Source: Ranitomeya imitator
Lineage: Eukaryota
Length of the DNA stretch: 64,000 nt
NCBI RefSeq assembly: GCF_032444005.1
Contig: NC_091283.1
Span: forward strand, 54,002,001-54,066,000
Direction of reading: 5' to 3'
Program-made: the position numbers and the translations under genes
Notes under the pieces: generated by a model
The model's input: only the letters and a program-made list of their open reading frames with translations
Databases searched by the model: none
Told to the model about the DNA's origin: nothing
Part shown: piece after piece, positions 3,001-64,000 of the stretch
How the letters are laid out: every line of letters starts with the position of its first letter
How positions within the stretch are numbered: position 1 is the first letter of the stretch

Positions 3001-6000
3001 GCTACATCACGTGTGTCCTGGTCTATATATACTGTATCATCACTACATTGTACTTACACATCACCGACTCTACTACATCACGTGTACCCTGGTCTATATA
3101 TACTGTATCATCACTACATTATACTTACACATCACCGACTCTACTACATCACGTGTGCCCTGGTCTATATATACTGTATCATCACTACATTGTACTTACA
3201 CATCACCGACTCTACTACATCACGTGTGCCCTGGTCTATATATACTGTATCATCACTACATTGTACTTACACATCACCGACTCTACTACATCACGTGTGC
3301 CCTGGTCTATATATACTGTATCATCACTACATTGTACTTACACATCACCGACTCTACTACATCACGTGTACCCTGGTCTATATATACTGTATCATCACTA
3401 CATTGTACTTACACATCACCGACTCTACTACATCACGTGTACCCTGGTCTATATATACTGTATCATCACTACATTGTACTTACACATATCCGACTCTGCT
3501 ACATCACATGTGCCCTGGTCTATATATACTGTATCATCACTACATTATACTTACACATCACCGACTCTGCTACATCACGTGTGCCCTGGTCTATATATAC
3601 TGTATCATCACTACATTGTACTTACACATCACCGACTCTACTACATCACGTGTGCCCTGGTCTATATATACTGTATCATCACTACATTGTACTTACACAT
3701 CACCGGCTCTACTACATCACGTGTGTCCTGGTCTATATATACTGTATCATCACTACATTGTACTTACACATCTCCGACTCTACTACATCACGTGTGCCCT
3801 GGTCTATATATACTGTATCATCACTACATTGTACTTACACATCACCGACTCTACTACATCACGTGTGTCCTGGTCTATATATACTGTATCATCACTACAT
3901 TGTACTTACACATCGCCGACTCTACTACATCACGTGTGCCCTGGTCTATATATACTGTATCATCACTACATTGTACTTACACATCACCGACTCTACTACA
4001 TCACGTGTGTCCTGGTCTATATATACTGTATCATCACTACATTGTACTTACACATCGCCGACTCTACTACATCACGTGTGCCCTGGTCTATATATACTGT
4101 ATCATCACTACATTGTACTTACACATCACCGACTCTACTACATCACGTGTGCCCTGGTCTATATATACTGTATCATCACTACATTGTACTTACACATCAC
4201 CGACTCTACTACATCACGTGTACCCTGGTCTATATATACTGTATCATCACTACATTGTACTTACACATCACCGACTCTACTACATCACGTGTACCCTGGT
4301 CTATATATACTGTATCATCACTACATTGTACTTACACATCACCGACTCTGCTACATCACGTGTACCCTGGTCTATATATACTGTATCATCACTACATTGT
4401 ACTTACACATATCCGACTCTGCTACATCACATGTGCCCTGGTCTATATATACTGTATCATCACTACATTATACTTACACATCACCGACTCTGCTACATCA
4501 CGTGTGCCCTGGTCTATATATACTGTATCATCACTACATTGTACTTACACATCACCGACTCTACTACATCACGTGTGCCCTGGTCTATATATACTGTATC
4601 ATCACTACATTGTACTTACACATCACCGACTCTACTACATCACGTGTGTCCTGGTCTATATATACTGTATCATCACTACATTGTACTTACACATCACCGA
4701 CTCTACTACATCACGTGTGTCCTGGTCTATATATACTGTATCATCACTACATTGTACTTACACATCGCCGACTCTACTACATCACGTGTGCCCTGGTCTA
4801 TATATACTGTATCATCACTACATTGTACTTACACATCACCGACTCTACTACATCACATGCGCCCTGGTCTATATATACTGTATCATCACTACATTGTACT
4901 TACACATCACCGACTCTACTACATCACGTGTGTCCTGGTCTATATATACTGTATCATCACTACATAGTACTTACACATCACCGACTCTGCTACATCACGT
5001 GCGCCCTGGTCTATATATACTGTATCATCACTACATTGTACTTACACATCACCGACTCTACTACATCACGTGTGTCCTGGTCTATATATACTGTATCATC
5101 ACTACATTGTACTTACACATCACCGACTCTACTACATCACGTGTGCCCTGGTCTATATACACTGTATCATCACTACATTGTACTTACACATCACCGACTC
5201 TACTACATCACGTGTGCCCTGGTCTATATATACTGTATCATCACTACATTGTACTTACACATCACCGACTCTACTACATCACGTGTGCCCTGGTCTATAT
5301 ACACTGTATCATCACTACATTGTACTTACACATCACCGACTCTACTACATCACATGTGCCCTGGTCTATATATACTGTATCATCACTACATTGTACTTAC
5401 ACATCACCGACTCTGCTACATCACGTGCGCCCTGGTCTATATATACTGTATCATCACTACATTGTACTTACACATCACCGACTCTACTACATCACGTGTG
5501 CCCTGGTCTATATATACTGTATCATCACTACATTGTACTTACACATATCCGACTCTACTACATCACGTGTGCCCTGGTCTATATATACTGTATCATCACT
5601 ACATTGTACTTACACATCACCGACTCTGCTACATCACGTGCGCCCTGGTCTATATATACTGTATCATCACTACATTGTACTTACACATCACCGACTCTAC
5701 TACATCACGTGTGCCCTGGTCTATATATACTGTATCATCACTACATTGTACTTACACATATCCGACTCTACTACATCACGTGTGCCCTGGTCTATATATA
5801 CTGTATTATCACTACATTGTACTTACACATCACCGACTCTGCTACATCACGTGCGCCCTGGTCTATATATACTGTATCATCACTACATTGTACTTACACA
5901 TATCCGACTCTACTACATCACGTGTGCCCTGGTCTATATATACTGTATCATCACTACATTGTACTTACACATATCCGACTCTACTACATCACGTGTGCCC

Positions 6001-30254: not shown

Positions 30255-30825
30255 CTGGGCCCTAGAACATATATTTCACTTCTCATATTGGAAACCTACG
30301 CCAAATTGGTAGCAGGTTTCACTCCGTTTTTCAAGCAGATGTCGCCCTATAGATTGCAACGGGTGAAATCTGCATTGAAAATCCATGGCTGACCCACCCT
30401 GGTCATGAGAACGCTCCTGATTTACGTTTCTTCCATGGCAGGAGCTTGTGATTCTGTGGACCCCTCGTACTGTACTGTCATTTGCCCCAGATTAGGGGTG
30501 CAGAGTCCATCCCGCCACATGTCTGCCCGAGCACATATACACTGCGATGTATTCCTATATGCAGCACCTCCATAGTTACATGATAAGTCTTAAGGTGCTA
30601 GGTTTATTAAAAGGTTTGGGGCTATAAAATATGGGCGCTCCACTCAGCGTCGGACTGGAGCACCTTGGGCCCCCCAGGGAAAATTATTCTTGGGGCCCAC
30701 TATGTAGATACATAGAAATAGATACAAGACCACCAATTGTGCAGTAAAAAGCACTAATATCAGGGTATAATATAAGGTAGTTCACGTCTTAATTATGTAG
30801 CAAGGGTTGGGGTGGCCCCCTCACA

Positions 30826-31195
30826 CAATATAATGTAGCCCCTTCATAAAATATAATGCAGTCCCCTCTCAGAATATAATGCAGCACCCCACAAAATATA
30901 ATGCAACCCCCTCAGGTATAACGCAGTCCCCACCATAGAATATAATGTAGCACTCTCATAGGGTATAATGCAGCCCCCCTCATATAGTATAATGCAGCCC
31001 ACCACAGAATAAAATGTAGTCCTCTGAGAGAATGCAGCCCCACCACAGAATATAATGCAGCCCCCCCATAGAGTATATTGTAGCCCCCTCGTATAGTATG
31101 GTGTAGCCCCCCATAATATAATGCAGTGTAGTCCCGAGAATAATGCAGTCCCCCCACAGAATATAATGTAGCCCCCTCATAAAGTATAATGCAGC
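30826..31195. repeat. Degenerate ~24-bp minisatellite (CCCC-ACAGAATATAATGCAG-like)
   Basis: Recurrent AATATAATG(C/T)AG followed by a C-run, roughly 15 copies. Confidence 0.85.
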
Positions 31196-31199
31196 CTCT

Positions 31200-31897
31200 C
31201 TCCACCCCCATCATTGTCCTCATCACCACCTCCATCATTGCCTTCTCCCCCTCCACCCCTATCATTCTCCCCACCACCTCCATCACTGCCCATTCCACCA
31301 CCTGCATTATTGCCTCCTCCCCCACCATCATTGTCCATTTCATCACCTCCATCATTGCCTCCCCCACCTTCATCATTGCCCATTTCATCACCTCCATCAT
31401 TGCCTCCCACCACCATCATTGCCTCCCCCTCCACCATCACTGACCATCACCTCCATCATCACCTCCGTCATTGCCTCCCCCCACCACCATCATTGCCCAT
31501 CACCTCCATCATTGCCTCCCACCACCATTGCCAATCACCTCCATCATTGCCTCTCCCCTCCACCATCATTGCCCATCATTGCCTCCCCACCATCATTGCC
31601 TATCAGCACCATCATTGACCATCACCTCCATCATTGCCTCCCCACCACCACTGCCTATCACCTCCATTGCCTATCACCTTCATTGCCTATCACCTCCATC
31701 ATTGCCCATCACTTCCATCATAGCCTCCCCACCACCATCAATGCCCATCACCTCCATCATTGCCTCCCCATCATTGCCTATCACCTCCATCATTGTCTCC
31801 CCCACCACCATCATTGCCCATCACCTCCATCATTGTCTTCCCCCCACCACCATCATTGCCCATCATCTCCATCGTTTCCCCCCACCAATATCATTGT
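31200..31897. repeat. Low-complexity CACC(T)CCATCATTGCC repeat, truncated by the gap
   Basis: Dozens of CCATCATTGCC words; it produces the Pro/Ser/His-rich and Gly/Asp-rich spurious ORFs. Confidence 0.9.
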
Positions 31898-32052
31898 NNN
31901 NNNNNNNNNNNNNNNNNNNNNNNNNNNNNNNNNNNNNNNNNNNNNNNNNNNNNNNNNNNNNNNNNNNNNNNNNNNNNNNNNNNNNNNNNNNNNNNNNNNN
32001 NNNNNNNNNNNNNNNNNNNNNNNNNNNNNNNNNNNNNNNNNNNNNNNNNNNN
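31898..32052. other. Assembly gap (155 N)
   Basis: Run of N. Confidence 1.
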
Positions 32053-32124
32053 CATACACACACACGCAGACACAGACACAGGGTCCATAAAGATATTTGG
32101 GGATGCGCACGGGCATAGGATTGG

Positions 32125-32495
32125 AGTATAGGGGTGCATATAGATATATGGGGGTGCACAGGCATAAAGGAGTGCATATAGATATATAGGAGTTAGGAGT
32201 GCACACAGACACATAGGACAGGCATATAGGCGTACATATAGCTATGTGGGGTGCCCCCAGAAACATCACAGGCATATAGGGGTGCATAGATATACAGGGG
32301 TACACACAGACACATAGGACATGCATTGGGTGCATATAGATATATAGGGGTGCACACAGACACATAGGACAGGCGTATAGGGGTGCATATAGATATATAG
32401 GGGTGCACACAGACACATAGGACAGGCATATAGGGGTGCATATAGATATATAGGGGTACACACAGACACATAGGACAGTTCGTATAGGGGTGCAT
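32125..32495. repeat. ~53-bp minisatellite
   Basis: Unit GGGGTGCATATAGATATATAGGGGTGCACACAGACACATAGGACAGGCATATA; GGGGTGCACAC recurs at 32347 and 32400. Confidence 0.85.
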
Positions 32496-33583: not shown

Positions 33584-34036
33584 CTAAACGCACACGTACT
33601 TTTTCCACCAAGCTTTAGAAAGAGTCTTCATCTTGCTAGCCGTGGCGGCCATTTTTCTCTCCCTCTGGTTTCTCAGGTCGGAGTATCGGATGCCCGATAG
33701 TATGGCCGTGTCAAAGACATCTTTCAGGTTCTTCTGGGTAAGAGCAGAACATTCGACGTAGGCGACCGCCCCGATTTTTTCAGCGAGGGCCCTGGCAGAG
33801 GATGGGGGCACAGGTTTCTCCCGATACCGTGCCAACTGGATGAGGACCTTGACATCCTCTCGGAGGTCACACTGTGTGCCCACCAGGATGAGAGGCACGT
33901 TGGGGCAGTGAGTTTGTATCTCCGAGATCCACTTCTCTGATATGTTCTGAAAAGAAGATGGGCTCACGACGCTGAAACACAGGATGACCACGTCGGTTTT
34001 GGGGTAGCAGAAGTGACGCAGCTTGTCGAATTCATC
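33584..34036 (-). CDS. RHOU-like: RhoU/RhoV-family GTPase, exon 3 (last coding exon)
   Basis: Acceptor TTTCTCTTTTCAG|GAT; encodes [31 protein letters not shown]...[10 protein letters not shown]...[11 protein letters not shown]...WWKKYVCV*, very close to human RhoU. Confidence 0.95.
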
Positions 34037-34348
34037 CTGAAAAGAGAAAGAAATAGGAGTTTATGGATGTGTCTCCAGAAGAAGACGACACGAACTATGG
34101 GGCACGAACGATGTACGATGGACAACCCTAGAAGATATGAAGTCTGCTCCTCAGGTGGCACATGTCAGGGTGAAGGCAACAGTGTCCATCCCTCCCACTG
34201 CAAGGTGCTGGTGGGCAAAGGAGGACATGGAATCTGTTCTGCAGGTTGACACAGATCTAAAATATGGCGTCTCTACCTCCCTACAGGGATATACATAGAA
34301 GGAGTCACGCAATATGAGGCCTGACATACAATCCAGCTGAGCACTCAC

Positions 34349-34407
34349 CTGCCCGGCGGTGTCACAAAGCTGAAGCTTGACGGGGGTGTTCTCTACTTGC
34401 ACCAGAG
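34349..34407 (-). CDS. RHOU-like: RhoU/RhoV-family GTPase, exon 2 (59 nt)
   Basis: TTTTTTTTTCCAG|CT...CAG|GTGAGT; (A)LVQVENTPVKLQLCDTAGQ contains the G3 box; phases match both neighbouring exons. Confidence 0.95.
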
Positions 34408-34875
34408 CTGGAAAAAAAAAAATGACGTCACCATTAACCATTTGCAAACAATCCAGACATTTGTACACAATCCTATATTCCTACAAACTACAATGTGACA
34501 TGGACAGGACAAGACTCCGATACTGCGGAATCTCGATAAGCAGCTGACACAATACGGGGATCTATTGTAAAATGTGACGTTATAAGATCTGACCCAAACC
34601 TGGTAAGTCCTGAATCAAGACTCGTACATTCCCAAATAGAAAAAAAAAAGGTGTCCTATAATGTCCTAATATAGGATCCCTTTCACGAATGCCCCGGAAA
34701 CCCTGTGCAATCAGCCTAAACTTGACGTGCAAGGAATACAAGCAAATCCGAGAAAAAAAGACCTTCTCGCCTCCCTTTACATGCAGATCACAGAGAAGAA
34801 AAATCGCCCAAATATGAATTCTAGGTGAAAAATGTAATTAACCCATATGCAATTTTTCAGAAAAATTTGTCCTAC

Positions 34876-35095
34876 CTGAGAAGTCATCGAAGGCGGTGGG
34901 AATGTATCGTGTTGGGTAACCATTGGTGGTGTAGCTGACCAGAAGGCTGGTCTTTCCTACTGCCCCATCTCCTAGTAGGACGCATTTGAGGTTCCTTTCT
35001 TGATCTCCGGTGGTTGGTAGGGGTTTAGGCTTGTGTGGTGGCACAGGGGGTGCAAAGTGTGACGTGTATTCCATGGACATCTCTTGAGGGGGCAT
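34876..35095 (-). CDS. RHOU-like: RhoU/RhoV-family GTPase, first coding exon (220 nt); whole CDS 732 nt = 243 aa
   Basis: MPPQ start, PPVPPHK proline motif, P-loop GDGAVGKT, effector region [20 protein letters not shown]; donor G|GTAGGA. Confidence 0.95.
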
Positions 35096-42420: not shown

Positions 42421-42444
42421 TCAGTGACACATGAAATCCCATTG
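42421..42444 (-). CDS. MIA: MIA exon 4 (24 nt)
   Basis: TTTCTTCCTTTTCAG|CAATGGGATTTCATGTGTCACTGA = QWDFMCH* (human KWDFYCQ*). Confidence 0.93.
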   Translation of the reverse strand, partial: QWDFMCH

Positions 42445-42865
42445 CTGAAAAGGAAGAAACAGAATAATGAAAAAGACAGGTAAAAAAAAAGCTTCTTGTT
42501 GTATCGAACTCACTGACAGATTCTTAGTTGACTCGTTCTGCATAGAGCAATAGACAGTCCAATGCAGTGCCAAACGCTGCAACATAATAGGGTGCACATA
42601 CCCTATACGGGAAGTGTCCACCTTTGGGAATATTTTTTTTTTAATTACTTTAATGTTTGCGGCTAAAAATAATTTTTTGCAATTGGGTTTTATTAAAAAA
42701 AAAAAAGTATGCACCCTTTGCCTTTTGTAGCCTCTGTGTGGCACAGTCTATTGACGGCTGCTTAATGAGTCAACTGAGAATCCGTTAGTGAGTTGGTCAT
42801 AACGGGGAAGTTTTCGTTTTTTGGGGTTTTGTAATCTGTACTTCGCTGAGTTCCGCTGCACTCAC

Positions 42866-42976
42866 GTCTGTTTTGACATCCACTTTTCCGGGCATTAAAT
42901 AATGTTCTTCTTCAACAATAGAACTTGGGAAGTAGCCCAACTTTGTTGTGTACTCGCCATATTCATCTCCTTGCAC
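42866..42976 (-). CDS. MIA: MIA exon 3 (111 nt)
   Basis: AATAG|GTG...GAC|GTGAGT; VQGDEYGEYTTKLGYFPSSIVEEEHYLMPGKVDVKTD. Confidence 0.95.
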
Positions 42977-43048
42977 CTATTAACAGAGCGCAGCGTGTCA
43001 TGTATGGCCGGTAATGACACCGTGAGTCATCTCTACATTCGTACTTAC

Positions 43049-43182
43049 ACTTCCGAGCCAGAACAGCCGCCCCCGGCCCTTTAACTTGGAGAATATATAC
43101 AAAGTTTGTCCGCGCCTGATGGGGATGAAGCGGCAATCAGGGGGGGTGTAGTCCGAGAGCGCCACCGCCATCGAGATGGGAT
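43049..43182 (-). CDS. MIA: MIA exon 2 (134 nt), SH3-like fold
   Basis: GACAG|AT...AGT|GTAAGT; (H)PISMAVALSDYTPPDCRFIPIRRGQTLYIFSKLKGRGRLFWLGS. Confidence 0.96.
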
Positions 43183-43264
43183 CTGTCCAGAGGAAAAACA
43201 TGTAAACCCATAATGTGTCCTACTGTGATATAGAGTCACACTAGAAGGACGTCAGCACATATTC

Positions 43265-43659
43265 CTCTCTTGTATGTGGTATTATTCAGTCACTATGTGG
43301 TAGTAATATGTGGTCCGGTCACGGTGTGGCGGCATTTGTCCCTTGTATGTGGTATTATTCAGTCACTATGTGGTGGTAATACAGTATATGGTCTGGTCAC
43401 GGTGTGGCGGCATTTGTCCCTTGTATGTGGTATTATTCAGTCACTATGTGGTAGTAATATGTGGTCCAGTCACGGTGTGGCGGCATTTGTCCCTTGTATG
43501 TGGTATTATTCAGTCACTATGTGGTGGTAATACAGTATATGGTCTGGTCACGGTGTGGCGGCATTTGACCCTTGTATGTGGTATTATTCAGTCACTATGT
43601 GGTAGTAATATGTGGTCCAGTCATGGTGTGGCGGCATTTGTCCCTTGTATGTGGTATTA
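43265..43659. repeat. Alternating 73/78-bp tandem repeat (151-bp dimer) in MIA intron 1
   Basis: TGTATG anchor at 43271, 43344, 43422, 43495, 43573 and 43646. Confidence 0.9.
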
Positions 43660-44062
43660 GGCTATGTGCACACGTTGCGGATTCTCTGCGGATCTGCAGC
43701 GTTTTTTGCAGTGCAGAAACGTTGCAGATCCACAATTGATTTACAGTACAATGTAAATTAATGAGAAAAAAAATGCTGTGCACACTTTGCGGAAAATCTG
43801 CTGCAGAAACGCTGCAGTTTAAAAGAAGTAGCATGTCACATCTTTTTTGTGATTTCTTAGTGTTTTTGTACCCATTCCATTATAGAAAACCGCAGGGGTA
43901 AAAACCGCAGCAAATCCGCAAGAAACTTCAACAAAAACGCACAAAAAACGCTGCGGAACCGCAAAAAAATTCGCTGCGGAACTACAGGTGCGTTTTCTGC
44001 CAGGAGAGGCAGAATCTGCACCAGAAATTCCTAAGCCTAATCCGCAACGTGTACACATAGCC
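43660..44062. mobile_element. Harbinger-type MITE inserted into the tandem repeat
   Basis: TTA TSD at 43657-43659 and 44063-44065; TIR GGCTATGTG(C/T)ACACGTTGCGGA. Confidence 0.92.
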
Positions 44063-44725
44063 TTATTCAGTCACTATGTGGTGGTAGTATATGGTCTGGT
44101 CATGGTGTGGCATATTTGTCCCCTGTATAATTCGGTCGCTATGTGGTGGTAATATGTGATTTGGTCATGGTGTGGCATCTTTGTCCCCTGTATTATTCAG
44201 TCGCTATGTGGTGGGAATATGCGATTTGGTCATGGTGTGGCGTATTCGTCCCCTGTATTATTCGGTCGCTATGTGGTGGCAATATGTGATTTGGTCATGG
44301 TGTGGTATATTTGTCCCCTGTATTATTCAGTCACTATGTGGTCGTAATATGTGATTTGGTCATGGTCTGGCGTATTTGTCCCCTGTATTATTCAGTCACT
44401 ATGTGGTGGTAATATGTGATTTGGTCATGGCGTGGCGTATTTGTCCCCTGTATTAATCGGTCACTATGTGGTAGTAATATGTGGTCTGGTCATGGTGTGG
44501 CGTATTTGTCCCCTGTATTATTCGGTCGCTATGTGGTGGGAATATGTGATTTGGTCATGGTGTGGCATGTTTGTCCCCTGTATTATTATTCGGTCGCTAT
44601 ATGGTGGTAATATTTGATTTGGTCATGGTCTGGTGTATTTGTCCCCTGTATTATTCGGTCACTATGTGGTAGTAATATGTGGTCTGGTCATGGTGTGGAG
44701 GTGTTTGTACCTTGTATGTGGTATT
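44063..44725. repeat. ~65-bp tandem repeat (~10 copies) related to the 73/78-bp repeat
   Basis: Unit CCCCTGTATTATTCAGTCACTATGTGGTGGTAATATGTGATTTGGTCATGGTGTGGCATATTTGT; equivalent ORF starts are 260 bp (4 x 65) apart. Confidence 0.9.
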
Positions 44726-46340
44726 AATTGGTCTTGGTATAGTGGATTGTGTTGTGCATGGAGGACACTTGTTCTCTCAGATATCAATAAGGGGAAGATT
44801 CTTTATTTACATTAGAGATTAATTACTTGGACGTCTCCCTGTCCTGTGACTGTTACACAGTAACAAATATGCACTTTCAGAGGTTCTCTGGCGAAAACAA
44901 GTATGGTAAGCCAAAACTAGCAGTAGGAGATAAATACAGAAGTGGTGACGTGTTTCTATTCTACTTTTCCTCTGACTTTTCCACTCCAGGTTTTGGCTTA
45001 CAAATACTGATGTAAAATACTGAACGTGTGCACGTGGCCTGATGATAAGTGGTAACTTATTGATTGGTGGAGGTCTGACATGTGGGACCCGCACTGATCG
45101 GCAGTATGTGGAACTTTTATCACCATTAGAATGGAGCGCATGTGCGACTCGACCACTGATCCATTCATTCCCTCAGTGGCTGCACTTGTTTTTTTCTGGA
45201 AGCCCCAAATAGCAGGAATGAAGCTGCGGACAGATATCCCACCTGACGTTGCAGTTTAAAATGGGTATAAAAGTTCCCCATTCTTCAGATCACTGCGGTT
45301 TCCAATGGTTGGATTTTTCCAAACGTGGCCGGTGGGTCTGTGGAAGGTTTGAGGGGTGGAGGCGGAGCTGGGATGGAGCTTGGGCGGAGCCTCAAGGGGG
45401 CCCAAAAATGTTGCCCTAAAATTCCTGGTGGCAGCCCTGCTTTGGGTCCTCGGCACCTCTTCATTTCCCCTTCCCCAGTCGCGGGCATCTTCTTTGGGCT
45501 CTCCCGGGTCCGATGTGACCGCGCACCATGTCTTCGCGTGTGACATCACAACATGTGAAAGGCCTAGTTGAATTGTAATTCCTGATCCCAGAGCGATGAG
45601 GCCAAAGAGGAATGAATGGGAAAATAACGATGGGGGAAGGGAAAAAGAAGAGGCGCAAGAAACTGGACGATGGAATGGGTGGAGAGTGAGGTATTATCTA
45701 ACCTTTTCCCTGGCCCATTACTGTGAAGCGAAACGATAGCTTCAGCCAGGAGCAAAAAACTCCGTACTCTGGCGATTCACCCATCTCTAATGTTCACCTA
45801 TAGGACTGTCCCCTCCAATAGGGGGCACTATAGACACCATTCTCTTCCTATAAAAGGGCCTATTGAATATTTTATTTCCCAGAAAGCATGGCTTGGCCTA
45901 GATGCCTCCTTAAGGCGAAACCTAACCAATTAACTCAACTCTCACCCAGCCGACTAATCTCCTGCTTTGAACATGGTGGAGGCCAAGGTCCCGAAACAGC
46001 TGTATACAAGTGGAAATTTCAGTTTGGCTTCCCACCCTGTTTTTTTTAAAGGGATGGTATTGATTTATAAGAATGCTACTTCCAATAGGAGATACCGGAG
46101 AACCAGTTCTCGCCCTCCGTGCAGGTTAGTCCGGTCGGATGATCAGATTTCAGCAGCTAAGTGGCCAAAGTTTGGAGTAAACTTCTCTATAGTGACATTT
46201 GTTAATTGAAAAATGAATTTCCCTTTAATGTTTAATTATTATCGTCTATTGACCTTGATTTGGCCAAAATGAATGAACTGTTCCCTTTTAGTAGATTTTC
46301 ATCCCCCAGATATAATCGTCATCGTTTTAGGGATACTTAC

Positions 46341-46458
46341 GACTACATTCTTCATCCGCACAAAGCTTCCTGTCTGCAAGTTTGGGCATTTTCCGGTCAC
46401 CACCAACCAGCCCAAGGAAAGCGCAGAAGAGAACGATCCCCAGCAGTGGCCGGTCCAT
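46341..46458 (-). CDS. MIA: MIA exon 1 (118 nt), signal peptide; whole CDS 387 nt = 128 aa
   Basis: MDRPLLGIVLFCAFLGLVGGDRKMPKLADRKLCADEECS, donor C|GTAAGT; MPKLADRKLCAD matches human MIA. Not present in the supplied ORF track. Confidence 0.95.
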
Positions 46459-46734
46459 GTCTGCGCTGCGCTGCTGCCTCCAGACACTGGACAGCCGCAG
46501 CTCGGCAGCAGGACTGTCAGCCAGAGCTCAGGAACCTGCTTCACGTCACCTCCCCACCTCTTTTTTTTCCATTTCAACTGCTAAGAGTTGGTGAAGGCAT
46601 TTCTTACCGCAAAATCCTATTTTTCAGAAAAAAAATAAAAAATTTTTTAAAGGACCATTACCCATAAACTTTAATACATGGGATAGAAAAATTGCAATTG
46701 TCATGAATTGAATTGAGAATAATGTAATGACTAA

Positions 46735-48194: not shown

Positions 48195-49792
48195 TTATCT
48201 ACTGTATATAGAGGTGTTATCAGTCATTATACGGGAGGAGGAGGTGAGCTGTGACATCACCTATTGTGAATGGTGGATCCTGTATTACCTACTGTATATA
48301 GAGGTGTTATCAGTCATTGTACAGGAGGTGAGCTGTGACATCCCCTATTGTGAATGGTGAATCCTGTGTTATCTACTGTATATAGAGGTGTTATCAGTCA
48401 TTGTACAGGAGGAGGTGAGCTGTGACATCACCTACTGTGAATGGTGGATCCTGTGTTATCTACTGTATATAGAGGGGTTATCAGTCATTGTACAGGAGGA
48501 GGAGGTGAGCTGTGACATTCCCTATTGTGAATGGTGGATCCTGTGTTATCTACTGTATATAAAGGTGTTATCAGTCATTGTACAGGAGGAGGAGGGGAGC
48601 TGTGACATCTATTGTGAATGGTGGATCCTGTGTTATCTACTGTATATAGAGGGGTTATCAGTCATTGTACAGGAGGAGGAGGTGAGCTGTGACATTCCCT
48701 ATTGTGAATGGTGGATCCTGTGTTATCTACTGTATATAAAGGTGTTATCAGTCATTGTACAGGAGGAGGAGGGGAGCTGTGACATCTATTGTGAATGGTG
48801 GATCCTGTGTTATCTACTGTATATAGAGGTGCTATCAGTCATTGTACAGGAGGAGGAGGTGAGCTGTGACATTCCCTATTGTGAATGGTGGATCCTGTGT
48901 TATCTACTGTATATAGAGGTGCTATCAGTCATTGTACAGGAGGAGGAGGTGAGCTGTGACATCAACTATTGTGAATGGTGGATCCTGTGTTATCTACTGT
49001 ATATAGAGGTGTTATCAGTCATTGTACAGGAGGAGGAGGGGAGCTGTGACATCTATTGTGAATGGTGGATCCTGTGTTATCTACTGTATATAGAGGTGCT
49101 ATCAGTCATTGTACAGTAGGAGGAGGTGAGCTGTGACATCCCCTATTGTGAATGGTGAATCCTGTGTTATCTACTGTATATAGAGGTGTTATCAGTCATT
49201 GTACAGGAAGAGGTGAGCTGTGACATCACCTATTGTGAATGGTGAATCCTGTGTTATCTACTGTATATAGAGGTGTTATCAGTCATTGTACAGGAGGTGA
49301 GCTGTGACATCACCTACTGTGAATGGTGGATCCTGTGTTATCTACTGTATATAGAGGGGTTATCAGTCATTGTACAGGAGGAGGAGGTGAGCTGTGACAT
49401 TCCCTATTGTGAATGGTGGATCCTGTGTTATCTACTGTATATAAAGGTGTTATCAGTCATTGTACAGGAGGAGGAGGGGAGCTGTGACATCTATTGTGAA
49501 TGGTGGATCCTGTGTTATCTACTGTATACAGAGGTGCTATCAGTCATTGTACAGGAGGAGGAGGTGAGCTGTGACATTCCCTATTGTGAATGGTGGATCC
49601 TGTGTTATCTACTGTATATAGAGGTGCTGTCAGTCATTGTACAGGAGGAGGAGGTGAGCTGTGACATTCCCTATTGTGAATGGTGGATCCTGTGTTATCT
49701 ACTGTATATAGAGGTGCTATCAGTCATTGTACAGGAGGAGGTGAGCTGTGATCTGTGAATTGTGGAGCCAGTATTATCTACTGTATGTAGAG
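48195..49792. repeat. 84-90-bp tandem repeat (~18 copies)
   Basis: Unit TGTGTTATCTACTGTATATAGAGGTGTTATCAGTCATTGTACAG(GAG)nGTGAGCTGTGACATCCCCTATTGTGAATGGTGGATCC; length varies by GAG number and a 3-nt deletion; a variant block recurs ~885 bp apart. Confidence 0.97.
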
Positions 49793-54621: not shown

Positions 54622-56279
<1,658 letters not shown>

Positions 56280-59115: not shown

Positions 59116-59204
59116 TTCTGTGTTTATTACTTCACCGCTGTGTATAAAGTTAGTTACAGGTGTCAGAAATGGCGGCAAACTAGTCCTGTTTGTAGAGGGT
59201 TTGC

Positions 59205-60036
59205 ACAGCAGTTTGGCCGGATTGCGCAGCAGTTTTGCCCGGATTGCATTCCGCCAGGTCGCTCAGCAGTTTTCGCCGGTTTGCTCAGCATTCCGCCAGG
59301 TCGCTCAGCATTCCGCCAGGTCGCTCAGCATTCCGCCAGGTCGCTCAGCATTCCGCCAGGTCGCTCAGCATTCCGCCAGGTCGCTCAGCATTCCGCCAGG
59401 TCGCTCAGCATTCCGCCAGGTCGCTCAGCATTCCGCCAGGTCGCTCAGCATTCCGCCAGGTCGCTCAGCAGTTTTGGCCGCTTTGCTCAGCATTCCGCCA
59501 GGTCGCTCAGCAGTTTTGGCCGCTTTGCTCAGCATTCCGCCAGGTCGCGCAGCAGTTTTGGCCGCTTTGCTCAGCATTCCGCCAGGTCGCTCAGCAGTTT
59601 TGGCCGCTTTGCTCAGCATTCCGCCAGATTGCGCAGCAGTTTTGGCCGCTTTGCTCAGCATTCCGCCAGGTCGCTCAGCAGTTTTGGCCGCTTTGCTCAG
59701 CATTCCGCCAGGTCGCTCAGCAGTTTTGGCCGCTTTGCTCAGCATTCCGCCAGGTCGCTCAGCAGTTTTGGCCGCTTTGCTCAGCATTCCGCCAGGTCGC
59801 TCAGCAGTTTTGGCCGCTTTGCTCAGCATTCCGCCAGGTCGCTCAGCAGTTTTGGCCGCTTTGCTCAGCATTTCGCCAGGTCGCTCAGCAGTTTTGGCCA
59901 CTTTGCTCAGCATTCCGCCAGATTGCGCAGCAGTTTTGGCCGCTTTGCTCAGCATTCCGCCAGGTCGCGCAGCAGTTTTGGCCGCTTTGCTCAGCATTCC
60001 GCCAGATTGTGCAGCAGTTTTGGCCGCTTTGCTCAG
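59205..60036. repeat. GC/CpG-rich compound minisatellite: 20-bp units then 42-bp units, in the first SNRPA coding intron
   Basis: CATTCCGCCAGGTCGCTCAG x~9 (59289-59470), then that unit plus CAGTTTTGGCCGCTTTGCTCAG x~13. Confidence 0.97.
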
Positions 60037-60067
60037 GCCGGTTTTACCATGGCTGATCCTCACTCAC

Positions 60068-60140
60068 CGTCCTTCTTGATCTTCTCGTTCAGGTTGTTGA
60101 TGTAGATGGTGTTGTTGGGTCTCATCTCCTGGACGGCCAT
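60068..60140 (-). CDS. SNRPA: SNRPA first coding exon (73 nt); whole CDS 849 nt = 282 aa U1A
   Basis: MAVQEMRPNNTIYINNLNEKIKKD, donor G|GTGAGT; acceptor TTTCTTTTCAG at 60152 implies an upstream non-coding exon. Not present in the supplied ORF track. Confidence 0.97.
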
Positions 60141-61801: not shown

Positions 61802-63353
61802 CACTGCTTAAAAAAATAAGGTGAACACTAAAATCCCACATTCTAGATATCTCTGAATGAAATATTCCTGTTGTAAATCTTTATTCATTACATAGTGGAA
61901 TGTGTCCAGAACAATCAAACATAACAATTATCAATGAAAATCACAACTAATATCCCACGGAGGTCTGGAGTTGGAATGATGCTCAAAATCAAAGTAGAAA
62001 ATCAATTTACAGGCTGATCCAACTTCAATGGAAATGCCTCATGACAAGGAAATGATGCTCAGTAGTGTGTGTGGCCTCCACGTGCCTGTATGACCTCCCT
62101 GCAAAGCCTGGGCATGCTCCTGGTGAGGTGGCGGATGGTCTCCTGAGGGATCTCCTCCCAGACCTGGACTAAAGCATCCGCCAACTCCTGGATAGTCTGT
62201 GGTCTTGGTGGTTGGTGCGAGACATGATGTCCCAGATGTGTTCAATCGGATTCAGGTCTGGGGAACGGTCGGGCCAGTCCATAGCTTCAATGCCTTCATC
62301 TTGCAGGAACTGCTGACACACTCCAGCCACATGAGATCTGGCATTGTCCTGCATTAGGAGGAACCCAGGGCCAACCGCACCAGCATATGGTCTCACAAGG
62401 GGTCTGAGGATCTCATCTCAGTACCTAATGGCAGTCAGGCTACCTCTGGCGAGCACATGGAGGGCTGTGCGGCCCTCCAAAGAAATGGCACCCCACACCA
62501 TTACTGACCCACTGCCAAACCGGTCATGCTGAAGGATGTTGCAGGCAGCAGATCGCTCTCCACGGCGTCTCCAGACTCTGTCACATGTGCTCAGTGTGAA
62601 CCTGCTTTCATCTGTGAAGAGCACAGGGCGCCAGTGGTGAAATTGCCAATCCTGGTGTTCTGTGGCAAATGCCAAGTGTCCTGCACGGTGTTGGGCTGTG
62701 AGCACAACCCCCATCTGTGGACGTCGGGCCCTCAGACCATCCTCATGGAGTCGGTTTCTAACCGTTTCTGCAGAGACATGCACATTTGTGGCCTGCTGGA
62801 GGTCATTTTGCAGAGCTCTGGCAGTGCTCCTCCTGTTCCTCCTTGCACAAAGGCTGAGGTAGCGGTCCTGCTGCTGGGTTGTTGCCCTCCTACTGCCCCC
62901 TCCACATCTCCTGGTGTCCTGGCCTGTCTCCTGGTAGCGCCTCCAGTCTGGACACTATGCTGACAGACACAGCAAACCTTCTTGCCACAGCTTGCATTGA
63001 TGTGCCATCCTGGATGAGCTGCACTACCTGAGCCACTTGTGTGGGTTGTAGAGTCCGTCTCATGCTACCACAAGTGTGAAAGAACAACCAACATTCAAAA
63101 GTGACCAAAACAGCCAGAAAGCATTGGTACTGAGATGTGGTCTGTGGTCCCCACCTGCAGAACCACTCCTTTATTGAGGGTGTATTGATAATTGCCAATA
63201 ATTTCCATCTGTTGTCTATTCCATTTTCACTACAGCATGTTGAATTGATTGTCAATCAGTGTTGCTTTCTAAGTGGACAGTTTGATTTCACAGAAGTTTG
63301 ATTTACTTGGAGTTATATTCTGTTAAGTGCTCCCTTTATTTTTTTGAGCAGTG
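61802..63353 (-). mobile_element. Near full-length Tc1 (DD34E) transposon with frameshifted transposase
   Basis: TIR CACTGCT(C/T)AAAAAAATAA.G.G.ACACT at both ends; TA on the right, TG on the left; HTH fragment [12 protein letters not shown]..., VLFTDESRF, and QDNARSH...SPDLNPIE with 34 residues between D and E. Confidence 0.95.
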
Positions 63354-63561: not shown

Positions 63562-63890
63562 ATGTCAGAGGAGGATGGCGCAGCCTGCACAGACGTTATT
63601 CATGTGCCTCCACCATTGGCACCACCACCCCAGGCACCTCCACCACCACTGGCACCACCACCCCAGGCACCTCCACCACCACTGGCACCACCACCCCAGG
63701 CACCTCCACCACCACTGGCACCACCACCCCAGGCACCTCCACCACCACTGGCTCCACCACCACCAGTCCTTTTCCCTTTTCCTCCACCTCAGGTGAAATG
63801 CAAGTTCTATAAGAAGGTGGCAGAGAACAGCGACCCATCAGTTGAAGGATGCAAAGAGTTAAAACGACTGATCAAGATTCAGCAGGAACG
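63562..63890 (+). CDS. ACTMAP: ACTMAP/C19orf54 (actin maturation protease), first coding exon
   Basis: Acceptor CTCTTTAG|CACTCATG; proline-rich N-terminus then FYKKVAENSDPSVEGCKELKRLIKIQQER (human ...VPKGREDVKRLLKLHKDR, from memory); donor CG|GTGAGT; head-to-head with SNRPA as in human. Confidence 0.8.
63607..63764 (+). repeat. Coding 33-bp tandem repeat, (PPPPLAPPPQA)n
   Basis: CCTCCACCACCACTGGCACCACCACCCCAGGCA, ~4.7 near-identical copies. Confidence 0.95.
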
Positions 63891-64000
63891 GTGAGTGATT
63901 TCGGGTGCGATTTTCGGAGGCAGTGATCATGCAACTTTTCCTTTTTGCTCGTTCAAAGAGGCGACATGAGAGAATTAACCGACGGCTTCTCCTCACAGAG

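Follow-up and report, generated by a model that had tools for sequence, protein, structure and literature searches.

A RhoU-like gene lies beside MIA in the genome of the frog Ranitomeya imitator, and its position raises the question of whether it corresponds to human RHOU, to human RHOV or to a further lineage of this family. We take human RHOU to lie at 1q42 with RAB4A, EGLN1 and ITPKB, human RHOV at 15q15 with ITPKA, and the gene order on human 19q13 to be ITPKC-ACTMAP-SNRPA-MIA-RAB4B-EGLN2. A first-pass annotation of the 64,000 nucleotides of contig NC_091283.1 analysed here (hereafter, the window) had proposed that the gene is a third member belonging to the SNRPA-MIA-RAB4B block, retained in amphibians and lost in mammals. 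In the following, the gene model, its phylogenetic placement and its gene order in other vertebrates are considered in turn.

Gene model, protein features and neighbourhood

The RhoU-like gene is encoded on the minus strand by three coding exons:

34876–35095, minus strand: coding exon 1 of the RhoUb-type gene, with the ATG at 35095 and a Pfam Ras match (1.8e-08)
34349–34407, minus strand: coding exon 2 of the RhoUb-type gene, 59 nt, with an AG acceptor and a GTGAGT donor, phase 0
33584–34036, minus strand: coding exon 3 of the RhoUb-type gene, with an AG acceptor, 150 codons plus the stop, and a Pfam Ras match (8.7e-25)

Read along the minus strand, exon 1 (220 nt) is followed at 34875 by a GT donor (phase 1); it codes for the PPVPPHK-containing N-terminal extension, the P-loop GDGAVGKT and the effector region. 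The translation of exon 2 is (A)LVQVENTPVKLQLCDTAGQ, and exon 3 contains switch II, TQCD, the Rho insert, CSAL and the C-terminal tail, with the stop codon at 33586–33584. The codon count (73, one split codon, 19 and 150) amounts to 243 amino acids. All three exon translations (3/3) were exact substrings, at offsets 0, 74 and 93, of XP_069602842.1 (P0134 in our protein set), whose database name is 'rho-related GTP-binding protein RhoU-like [Ranitomeya imitator]', and the split codon G|CT, giving Ala, also agreed with this entry. P0134 served as a stand-in for the spliced product in later analyses, the exons being compared one by one. An intact 243-aa RhoU-like gene at 33584–35095, as described in the first-pass annotation, was thus recovered with three minus-strand exons, canonical splice sites, and a codon count and coordinates that agree. 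It is already known, being annotated in Ranitomeya imitator and belonging to a known orthology group; the suggestion that it might be an unnamed RhoU-like locus did not hold, given this annotation and its membership of the 90%-identity cluster that includes Xenopus 'rhou'.

With regard to the protein itself, it has an N-terminal extension of 37 residues, a Tyr (in NGYP) at the position of Cdc42 F28, the PPVPPHK motif and the tail WWKKYVCV, which is of the non-CAAX Cys type. The features of a Ras-type G domain were present (P-loop, switch II DTAGQ, TQCD as the NKxD-type motif and CSAL as the SAK-type motif; Pfam Ras in exons 1 and 3), as was the Rho insert helix between G4 and G5, a region through which the alignment to human RhoU (2Q3H) ran without gaps. 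This same structure was the best solved relative, with 308 bits over 186 gap-free residues compared to 232 bits for Cdc42, i.e., a lead of 76 bits for RhoU in the PDB search. The residues listed in the first-pass annotation (the G12 and Q61 equivalents, Tyr at the F28 position and PPVPPHK) were all found, and on these sequence features the protein is assignable to the RhoU/RhoV atypical (Wrch/Chp) subfamily.

Only 2 of the 243 residues differed between the Ranitomeya imitator protein and its Dendrobates tinctorius orthologue, and comparison with the X. tropicalis cDNA gave pN values of 0.06–0.07 and pS values of 0.69–0.86, for which, given that dS was saturated in exons 2 and 3, it can be stated solely that pN is much lower than pS. 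These two comparisons indicate that the gene is under purifying selection and strong constraint. Could the annotated gene nevertheless be a decaying, non-functional relic? The exact Ranitomeya protein was absent from the transcripts of the Logan assemblies searched, as a relic might be. Such a reading is, however, highly improbable in view of the intact open reading frame, the canonical splice sites, the near identity to Dendrobates, the low pN against Xenopus, the retention of all G-box motifs and the occurrence of 243-aa orthologues in more than 15 frog genera (cluster look-up). The orthologue is encoded by uninterrupted X. tropicalis transcripts.

The remaining features of the window that concern gene order are as follows:

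42424–46458, minus strand: MIA gene, with Pfam SH3_2 and human MIA (1HJD/1I1J) as best PDB match (E 1e-19)
55920–56093, minus strand: SNRPA (U1A) RRM1 exon inside the ORF piece 55848–56252, with RRM_1 (4e-10) and U1A as best PDB match (5e-32)
63562–63894, plus strand: ORF taken as a candidate first exon of ACTMAP, the remainder of which would be off-window
1–30263, no strand assigned: 71-bp satellite array of about 426 copies with 96% matches and a GC skew of about -0.44 (C over G)

The first MIA exon has its start codon near 46458 and codes for a signal peptide and KLCADEEC; MIA exons lie inside 46330–46527, 43001–43219 and 42800–42976, and the last exon ends with WDFMCH near 42424. The SNRPA exon matched U1A better than U2B'' in the PDB search. 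MIA and the Rho gene thus share a strand, the Rho gene following MIA at a distance of about 7.3 kb and SNRPA lying on the far side of MIA; the order given in the first-pass annotation, with SNRPA, then MIA and directly downstream the Rho gene, was confirmed by the Pfam and PDB matches of the MIA and SNRPA exons. No Pfam match was obtained for the candidate ACTMAP exon at 63562–63894. The side of the Rho gene that faces away from MIA, where RAB4B would be expected, is filled by the satellite and an assembly gap, so that any RAB4B would be off-window.

Several other elements were observed in the window. The satellite is followed by several short degenerate arrays (30815–32495) around an N gap at 31898–32052. 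Between SNRPA and the putative ACTMAP start, ORF pieces at 62169–63255 (minus strand) with Tc1/mariner-type transposase motifs (LFTDESRF, WPDRSPDLNPIEHIWD) look like a decayed Tc1-like element. Long ORFs at 48388–49758 (plus strand) and 59120–60105 (both strands) consist of tandem repeats with units such as LSVIVQEEEVSCDIPYCEWWILCYLLYIE and SAVLAALLSIPPGR; they were rejected as genes, the repeats being minisatellites.

Placement of the Ranitomeya protein among RhoU and RhoV proteins

In a word-index search with exon 3, frog proteins named RhoU or RhoU-like ranked at the top (85–100% identity), followed by salamander and caecilian 'RhoU-like' proteins and then by the 'ras homolog family member Ub' proteins of sharks, bichir, sturgeon, coelacanth, gar and teleosts (70–75%). 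Amniote RHOU proper and the fish 'Ua' proteins ranked lower, at 61–65% identity. Under LG+C20+F+G4, a careful maximum-likelihood analysis of 92 proteins (243 columns) gave a tree with the following groups and supports:

Ub clade (sharks and skate, coelacanth, lungfish, all three amphibian orders, turtles, lepidosaurs and ray-fins): 100/100
Ua clade (RHOU proper: mammalian, bird, salamander and fish Ua proteins): 98/92
RhoV clade, which excludes the Ranitomeya protein: 99/96
Ua and Ub together: 99/98
Anurans, including the Ranitomeya protein: 100/99
Amphibian Ub: 97/96

RhoU/V proteins together with their invertebrate homologues were separated from the Cdc42/Rac-like representatives at 100/99 in the same tree. 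A tree of this kind had been proposed in the first-pass annotation, with nesting inside the RHOU clade pointing to a translocated orthologue; the protein fell outside that clade. When the nine anuran rows were forced to group with Ua, the resulting topology was rejected by the AU test (delta lnL 66.5, p-AU 0.00013). The claim that the gene is an orthologue of neither RHOU nor RHOV is therefore upheld by the 100/100 support of the Ub clade and by this rejection of a grouping of frogs with RHOU.

The two clades also differ in sequence signatures. In Ub proteins, the extension spans 35–40 residues and includes APPVPPH[KRQ]P, and the tail, WWKKYVC[VI]x, has a single Cys (frogs lack its last residue); in Ua proteins, the extension is longer and includes PPVPPRR, and the tail reads YCC[FL]x. 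Neither PPVPPRR nor YCC[FL]x is present in the Ranitomeya protein. Both genes were found in sturgeon, Brienomyrus, Arapaima, lungfish, Pleurodeles, Lissotriton, two caecilians, Dermochelys and Hemicordylus; since these ten sampled species carry the two, Ua and Ub are paralogues and not allelic or annotation variants. Cluster look-ups further identified 'RhoU-like' proteins of the Ub type in turtles, lizards, a skink, tuatara and lungfish, and salamanders, caecilians and lungfish have an additional, separate RhoU of 253–259 aa. In protein database searches, RhoUb was not seen in birds or crocodilians.

Taken together, we assign the Ranitomeya gene, with a probability of roughly 90%, to the RhoUb lineage, as an orthologue of fish rhoub, of the reptile 'RhoU-like' genes and of Xenopus 'rhou'. 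The expectation that this copy was kept in amphibians was correct, although it is not specific to them, given that it was also found in ray-fins, sharks, coelacanth, lungfish, turtles, lizards and tuatara. As to its age, the sequence comparisons support a split between RhoUb and RHOU that predates the divergence of sharks and bony vertebrates. A duplication confined to bony vertebrates, with sharks outside all bony-vertebrate Ua and Ub proteins, was a candidate formulated after a first tree had been viewed and was rejected by the AU test (delta lnL 38.3, p-AU 0.0067).

As a separate observation, three teleost 'RhoU-like' proteins, P0266 from Umbra pygmaea and P0336 and P0401 from Poecilia reticulata, formed a group sister to Ua (98/67) and distinct from Ua, Ub and RhoV. 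They share the Ua-type PPVPPRR and have a long, divergent tail. They probably represent a Ua duplicate of teleosts that evolves fast, although an old lineage of its own, the fourth, is conceivable.

Gene order in other vertebrates, frog RHOU and the origin of RhoUb

In order to compare gene order across species, flanks of ±10 kb around the RhoU-type genes were considered. In Dermochelys, an RRM gene (281 aa), an SH3_2 gene (130 aa), the RhoU-like gene (232 aa) and a Ras-type gene (213 aa) follow one another in this order on one strand. Pelodiscus shows the same RRM, SH3_2, RhoU-like and Ras-type genes, divergently oriented with respect to an ACTMAP-like_C gene, and an SH3_2 gene is located upstream of the RhoU-like gene in Podarcis and in Dendrobates tinctorius. 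In tblastn comparisons, the MIA exons of the window were 65–79% identical to the turtle and lizard SH3_2 genes upstream of RhoUb, and the SNRPA exon was 91–94% identical to the turtle RRM gene. RhoUb has kept its place between MIA and the Ras-type gene. The latter, of which the 10-kb flank holds a first tiny exon and a long intron and no readable G-domain exon, is presumably RAB4B. The proposed third lineage, located in the SNRPA-MIA-(RAB4B) block and lacking in mammals, is thus borne out by the Ub clade, the AU test and the turtle and lizard gene order.

Outside these groups, the upstream neighbour of Ub within 10 kb was a reticulon gene, not MIA, in gar and seahorse. The 10-kb flanks of the white shark Ub contained no genes, and those of X. 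laevis rhou.L showed neither called neighbours nor a MIA exon. Two observations concern MIA-like sequences near RhoUb. In Podarcis (L007), a second stretch similar to MIA exon 2, at 5195–5338 and 77% identical to the exon in the window, lies between MIA and the RhoU-like gene and may be a partial duplicate. The Mantella aurantiaca protein P0133 (KAM5146225.1, 127 aa) is named 'melanoma-derived growth regulatory protein' yet belongs to the RhoUb 90% cluster, probably through a mix-up of the adjacent MIA and Rho genes in naming or in the gene model.

The first-pass annotation had further anticipated a separate RHOU in the Ranitomeya genome. We searched with true RHOU queries from a turtle and a salamander, each search listing 120 representatives of 90% clusters; these lists span the whole Ua clade, down to the scores at which shark and coelacanth Ub proteins begin. 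They contained mammals, birds, crocodilians, squamates, turtles, salamanders, caecilians, lungfish and ray-fins, with caecilian and lungfish Ua seen as cluster members. No frog RHOU (Ua) was among the 90%-cluster representatives listed, among which a conserved frog copy could hide in a large amniote cluster, and no frog RHOU was found among unnamed Logan/ENA representatives of the RhoU type, all of which resembled amniote, teleost or salamander proteins, one being a turtle-type Ub. Given that no frog appeared in the RHOU-query lists, frogs probably have Ub alone, and the anticipated separate RHOU of Ranitomeya is probably not there, as no anuran RHOU-type protein is among the representatives listed. 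We consider it fairly probable that anurans lost RHOU (Ua) and kept RhoUb alone, with the reverse in mammals and apparently in birds, that is, a reciprocal loss of ohnologs. For shark, skate and coelacanth, no Ua was present among the RHOU-query matches listed and their 'Ub' was found; cartilaginous fishes, including sharks, and coelacanth may therefore carry Ub alone, with Ua lost.

An absence of a second RhoU in frogs would also be explained if the frog gene were the true RHOU, translocated beside MIA in the frog lineage, a reading that is compatible with the name rhou given by Xenopus curators and with the lack of an anuran RHOU-type protein among the cluster representatives listed. It is scarcely credible, however, against the AU test in which anurans were joined to Ua (p=0.00013) and the 100/100 support of the Ub clade, which contradicts a translocated RHOU. 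Moreover, the position adjacent to MIA is also that of the gene in turtles and a lizard, which have a separate RHOU, and salamanders and caecilians have both genes, with the frog gene grouping with their Ub copy (97/96).

Assignment to the RhoUb lineage leaves the mode of duplication to be considered. Judging from the human map positions assumed above, RhoUb most likely arose in the vertebrate whole-genome duplications, i.e., as a 2R ohnolog. RAB4A/B, EGLN1/2 and ITPKA/B/C are, on those presumed maps, distributed in parallel to RHOU, RHOV and the MIA block, as expected of 2R paralogons, and the turtle Ras-type gene sits exactly at the expected position of RAB4B; both points argue against the origin of RhoUb as an ancient local or segmental duplicate that preceded the gnathostome ancestor, in which case it would be an old paralogue and not an ohnolog. 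The tree and the AU tests date the split and are silent on its mechanism, and the Ua gene of the teleost Betta is neighboured by tbp/pdcd2/AAA/PP2C-type genes, beside which no RAB4A-type neighbourhood was found, so that such a small-scale duplication keeps some plausibility, albeit as an unlikely origin compared to 2R.

Predicted properties of RhoUb and relation to known RhoU proteins

By homology with RhoU, the Ranitomeya protein is predicted to be a GTPase with a Cdc42-like G domain, comprising an intact P-loop, the Q61 equivalent, TQCD and the Rho insert. The Tyr at the F28 position would confer fast intrinsic nucleotide exchange and thereby a mostly GTP-bound state, and the N-terminal PPVPPHKPK would recruit SH3 adaptors, both as predicted from RhoU. 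From the tail WWKKYVCV, with its single Cys, membrane anchoring through palmitoylation of this residue, and not through prenylation, would be expected. Output would pass through effectors of the PAK/Par6 type to cell adhesion and migration, again as predicted from RhoU homology. In frogs, RhoUb is probably the sole RhoU-type gene.

Among known members of the family, the rhoub proteins of zebrafish and other fishes, sharks and coelacanth share with the Ranitomeya protein the 100/100 clade, a length class of 242–245 aa, APPVPPH[KRQ]P and WWKKYVC[VI], although the tail is shorter by one residue in frogs (YVCV versus YVCVQ/H/V). Xenopus rhou (NP_001016852; rhou.L, NP_001087939; rhou.S) is its direct orthologue, with a common 90%-identity cluster, a place in the same anuran clade (100/99), 243 aa and an identical tail. 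Human RHOU/Wrch-1 (2Q3H) shares the Tyr at the F28 position, a proline-rich N-terminus, a non-CAAX Cys tail and WWKKY, but differs in belonging to the Ua lineage and in having a longer N-terminal extension with PPVPPRR and the two-Cys tail YCCFV. RHOV/Chp is likewise of the atypical subfamily and has a single-Cys tail (KKFFCFV); in contrast, it forms its own clade, is about 56–58% identical and, in the sequences inspected, has no N-terminal PPVPP motif.

These relationships bear on current usage. A 2024 review derives zebrafish rhoua and rhoub from "a genome duplication event" in zebrafish and takes Xenopus RhoU as RhoU, and Faure and Fort described the two GTPases as "highly conserved across vertebrates". 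The zebrafish a/b naming implies a teleost duplicate, which is contradicted by the tree, and the naming and treatment in reviews of Xenopus rhou as the orthologue of mammalian RHOU is not supported by it either. No paper bringing together rhou and ohnolog was found in the literature searched, a body from which the main phylogenetic study (Boureux 2007) was missing. What embryo studies in frogs call 'RhoU' is probably no true orthologue of human RHOU.

Unremarkable in itself, the Ranitomeya gene draws its value from orthology and naming, a matter of moderate interest to specialists: rhoub is older than the split between sharks and bony vertebrates, survives in many tetrapods and is the Xenopus rhou. 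If the reciprocal loss is true, the Xenopus 'RhoU' of neural-crest and gastrulation studies would have no mammalian orthologue, and, with RHOU lost in frogs, the results obtained with it on cranial neural crest migration would concern a paralogue that is missing in mammals. This would amount to hidden paralogy in a gene of a model organism, and revision would be needed both for the a/b naming in fishes and for the name used in frogs.
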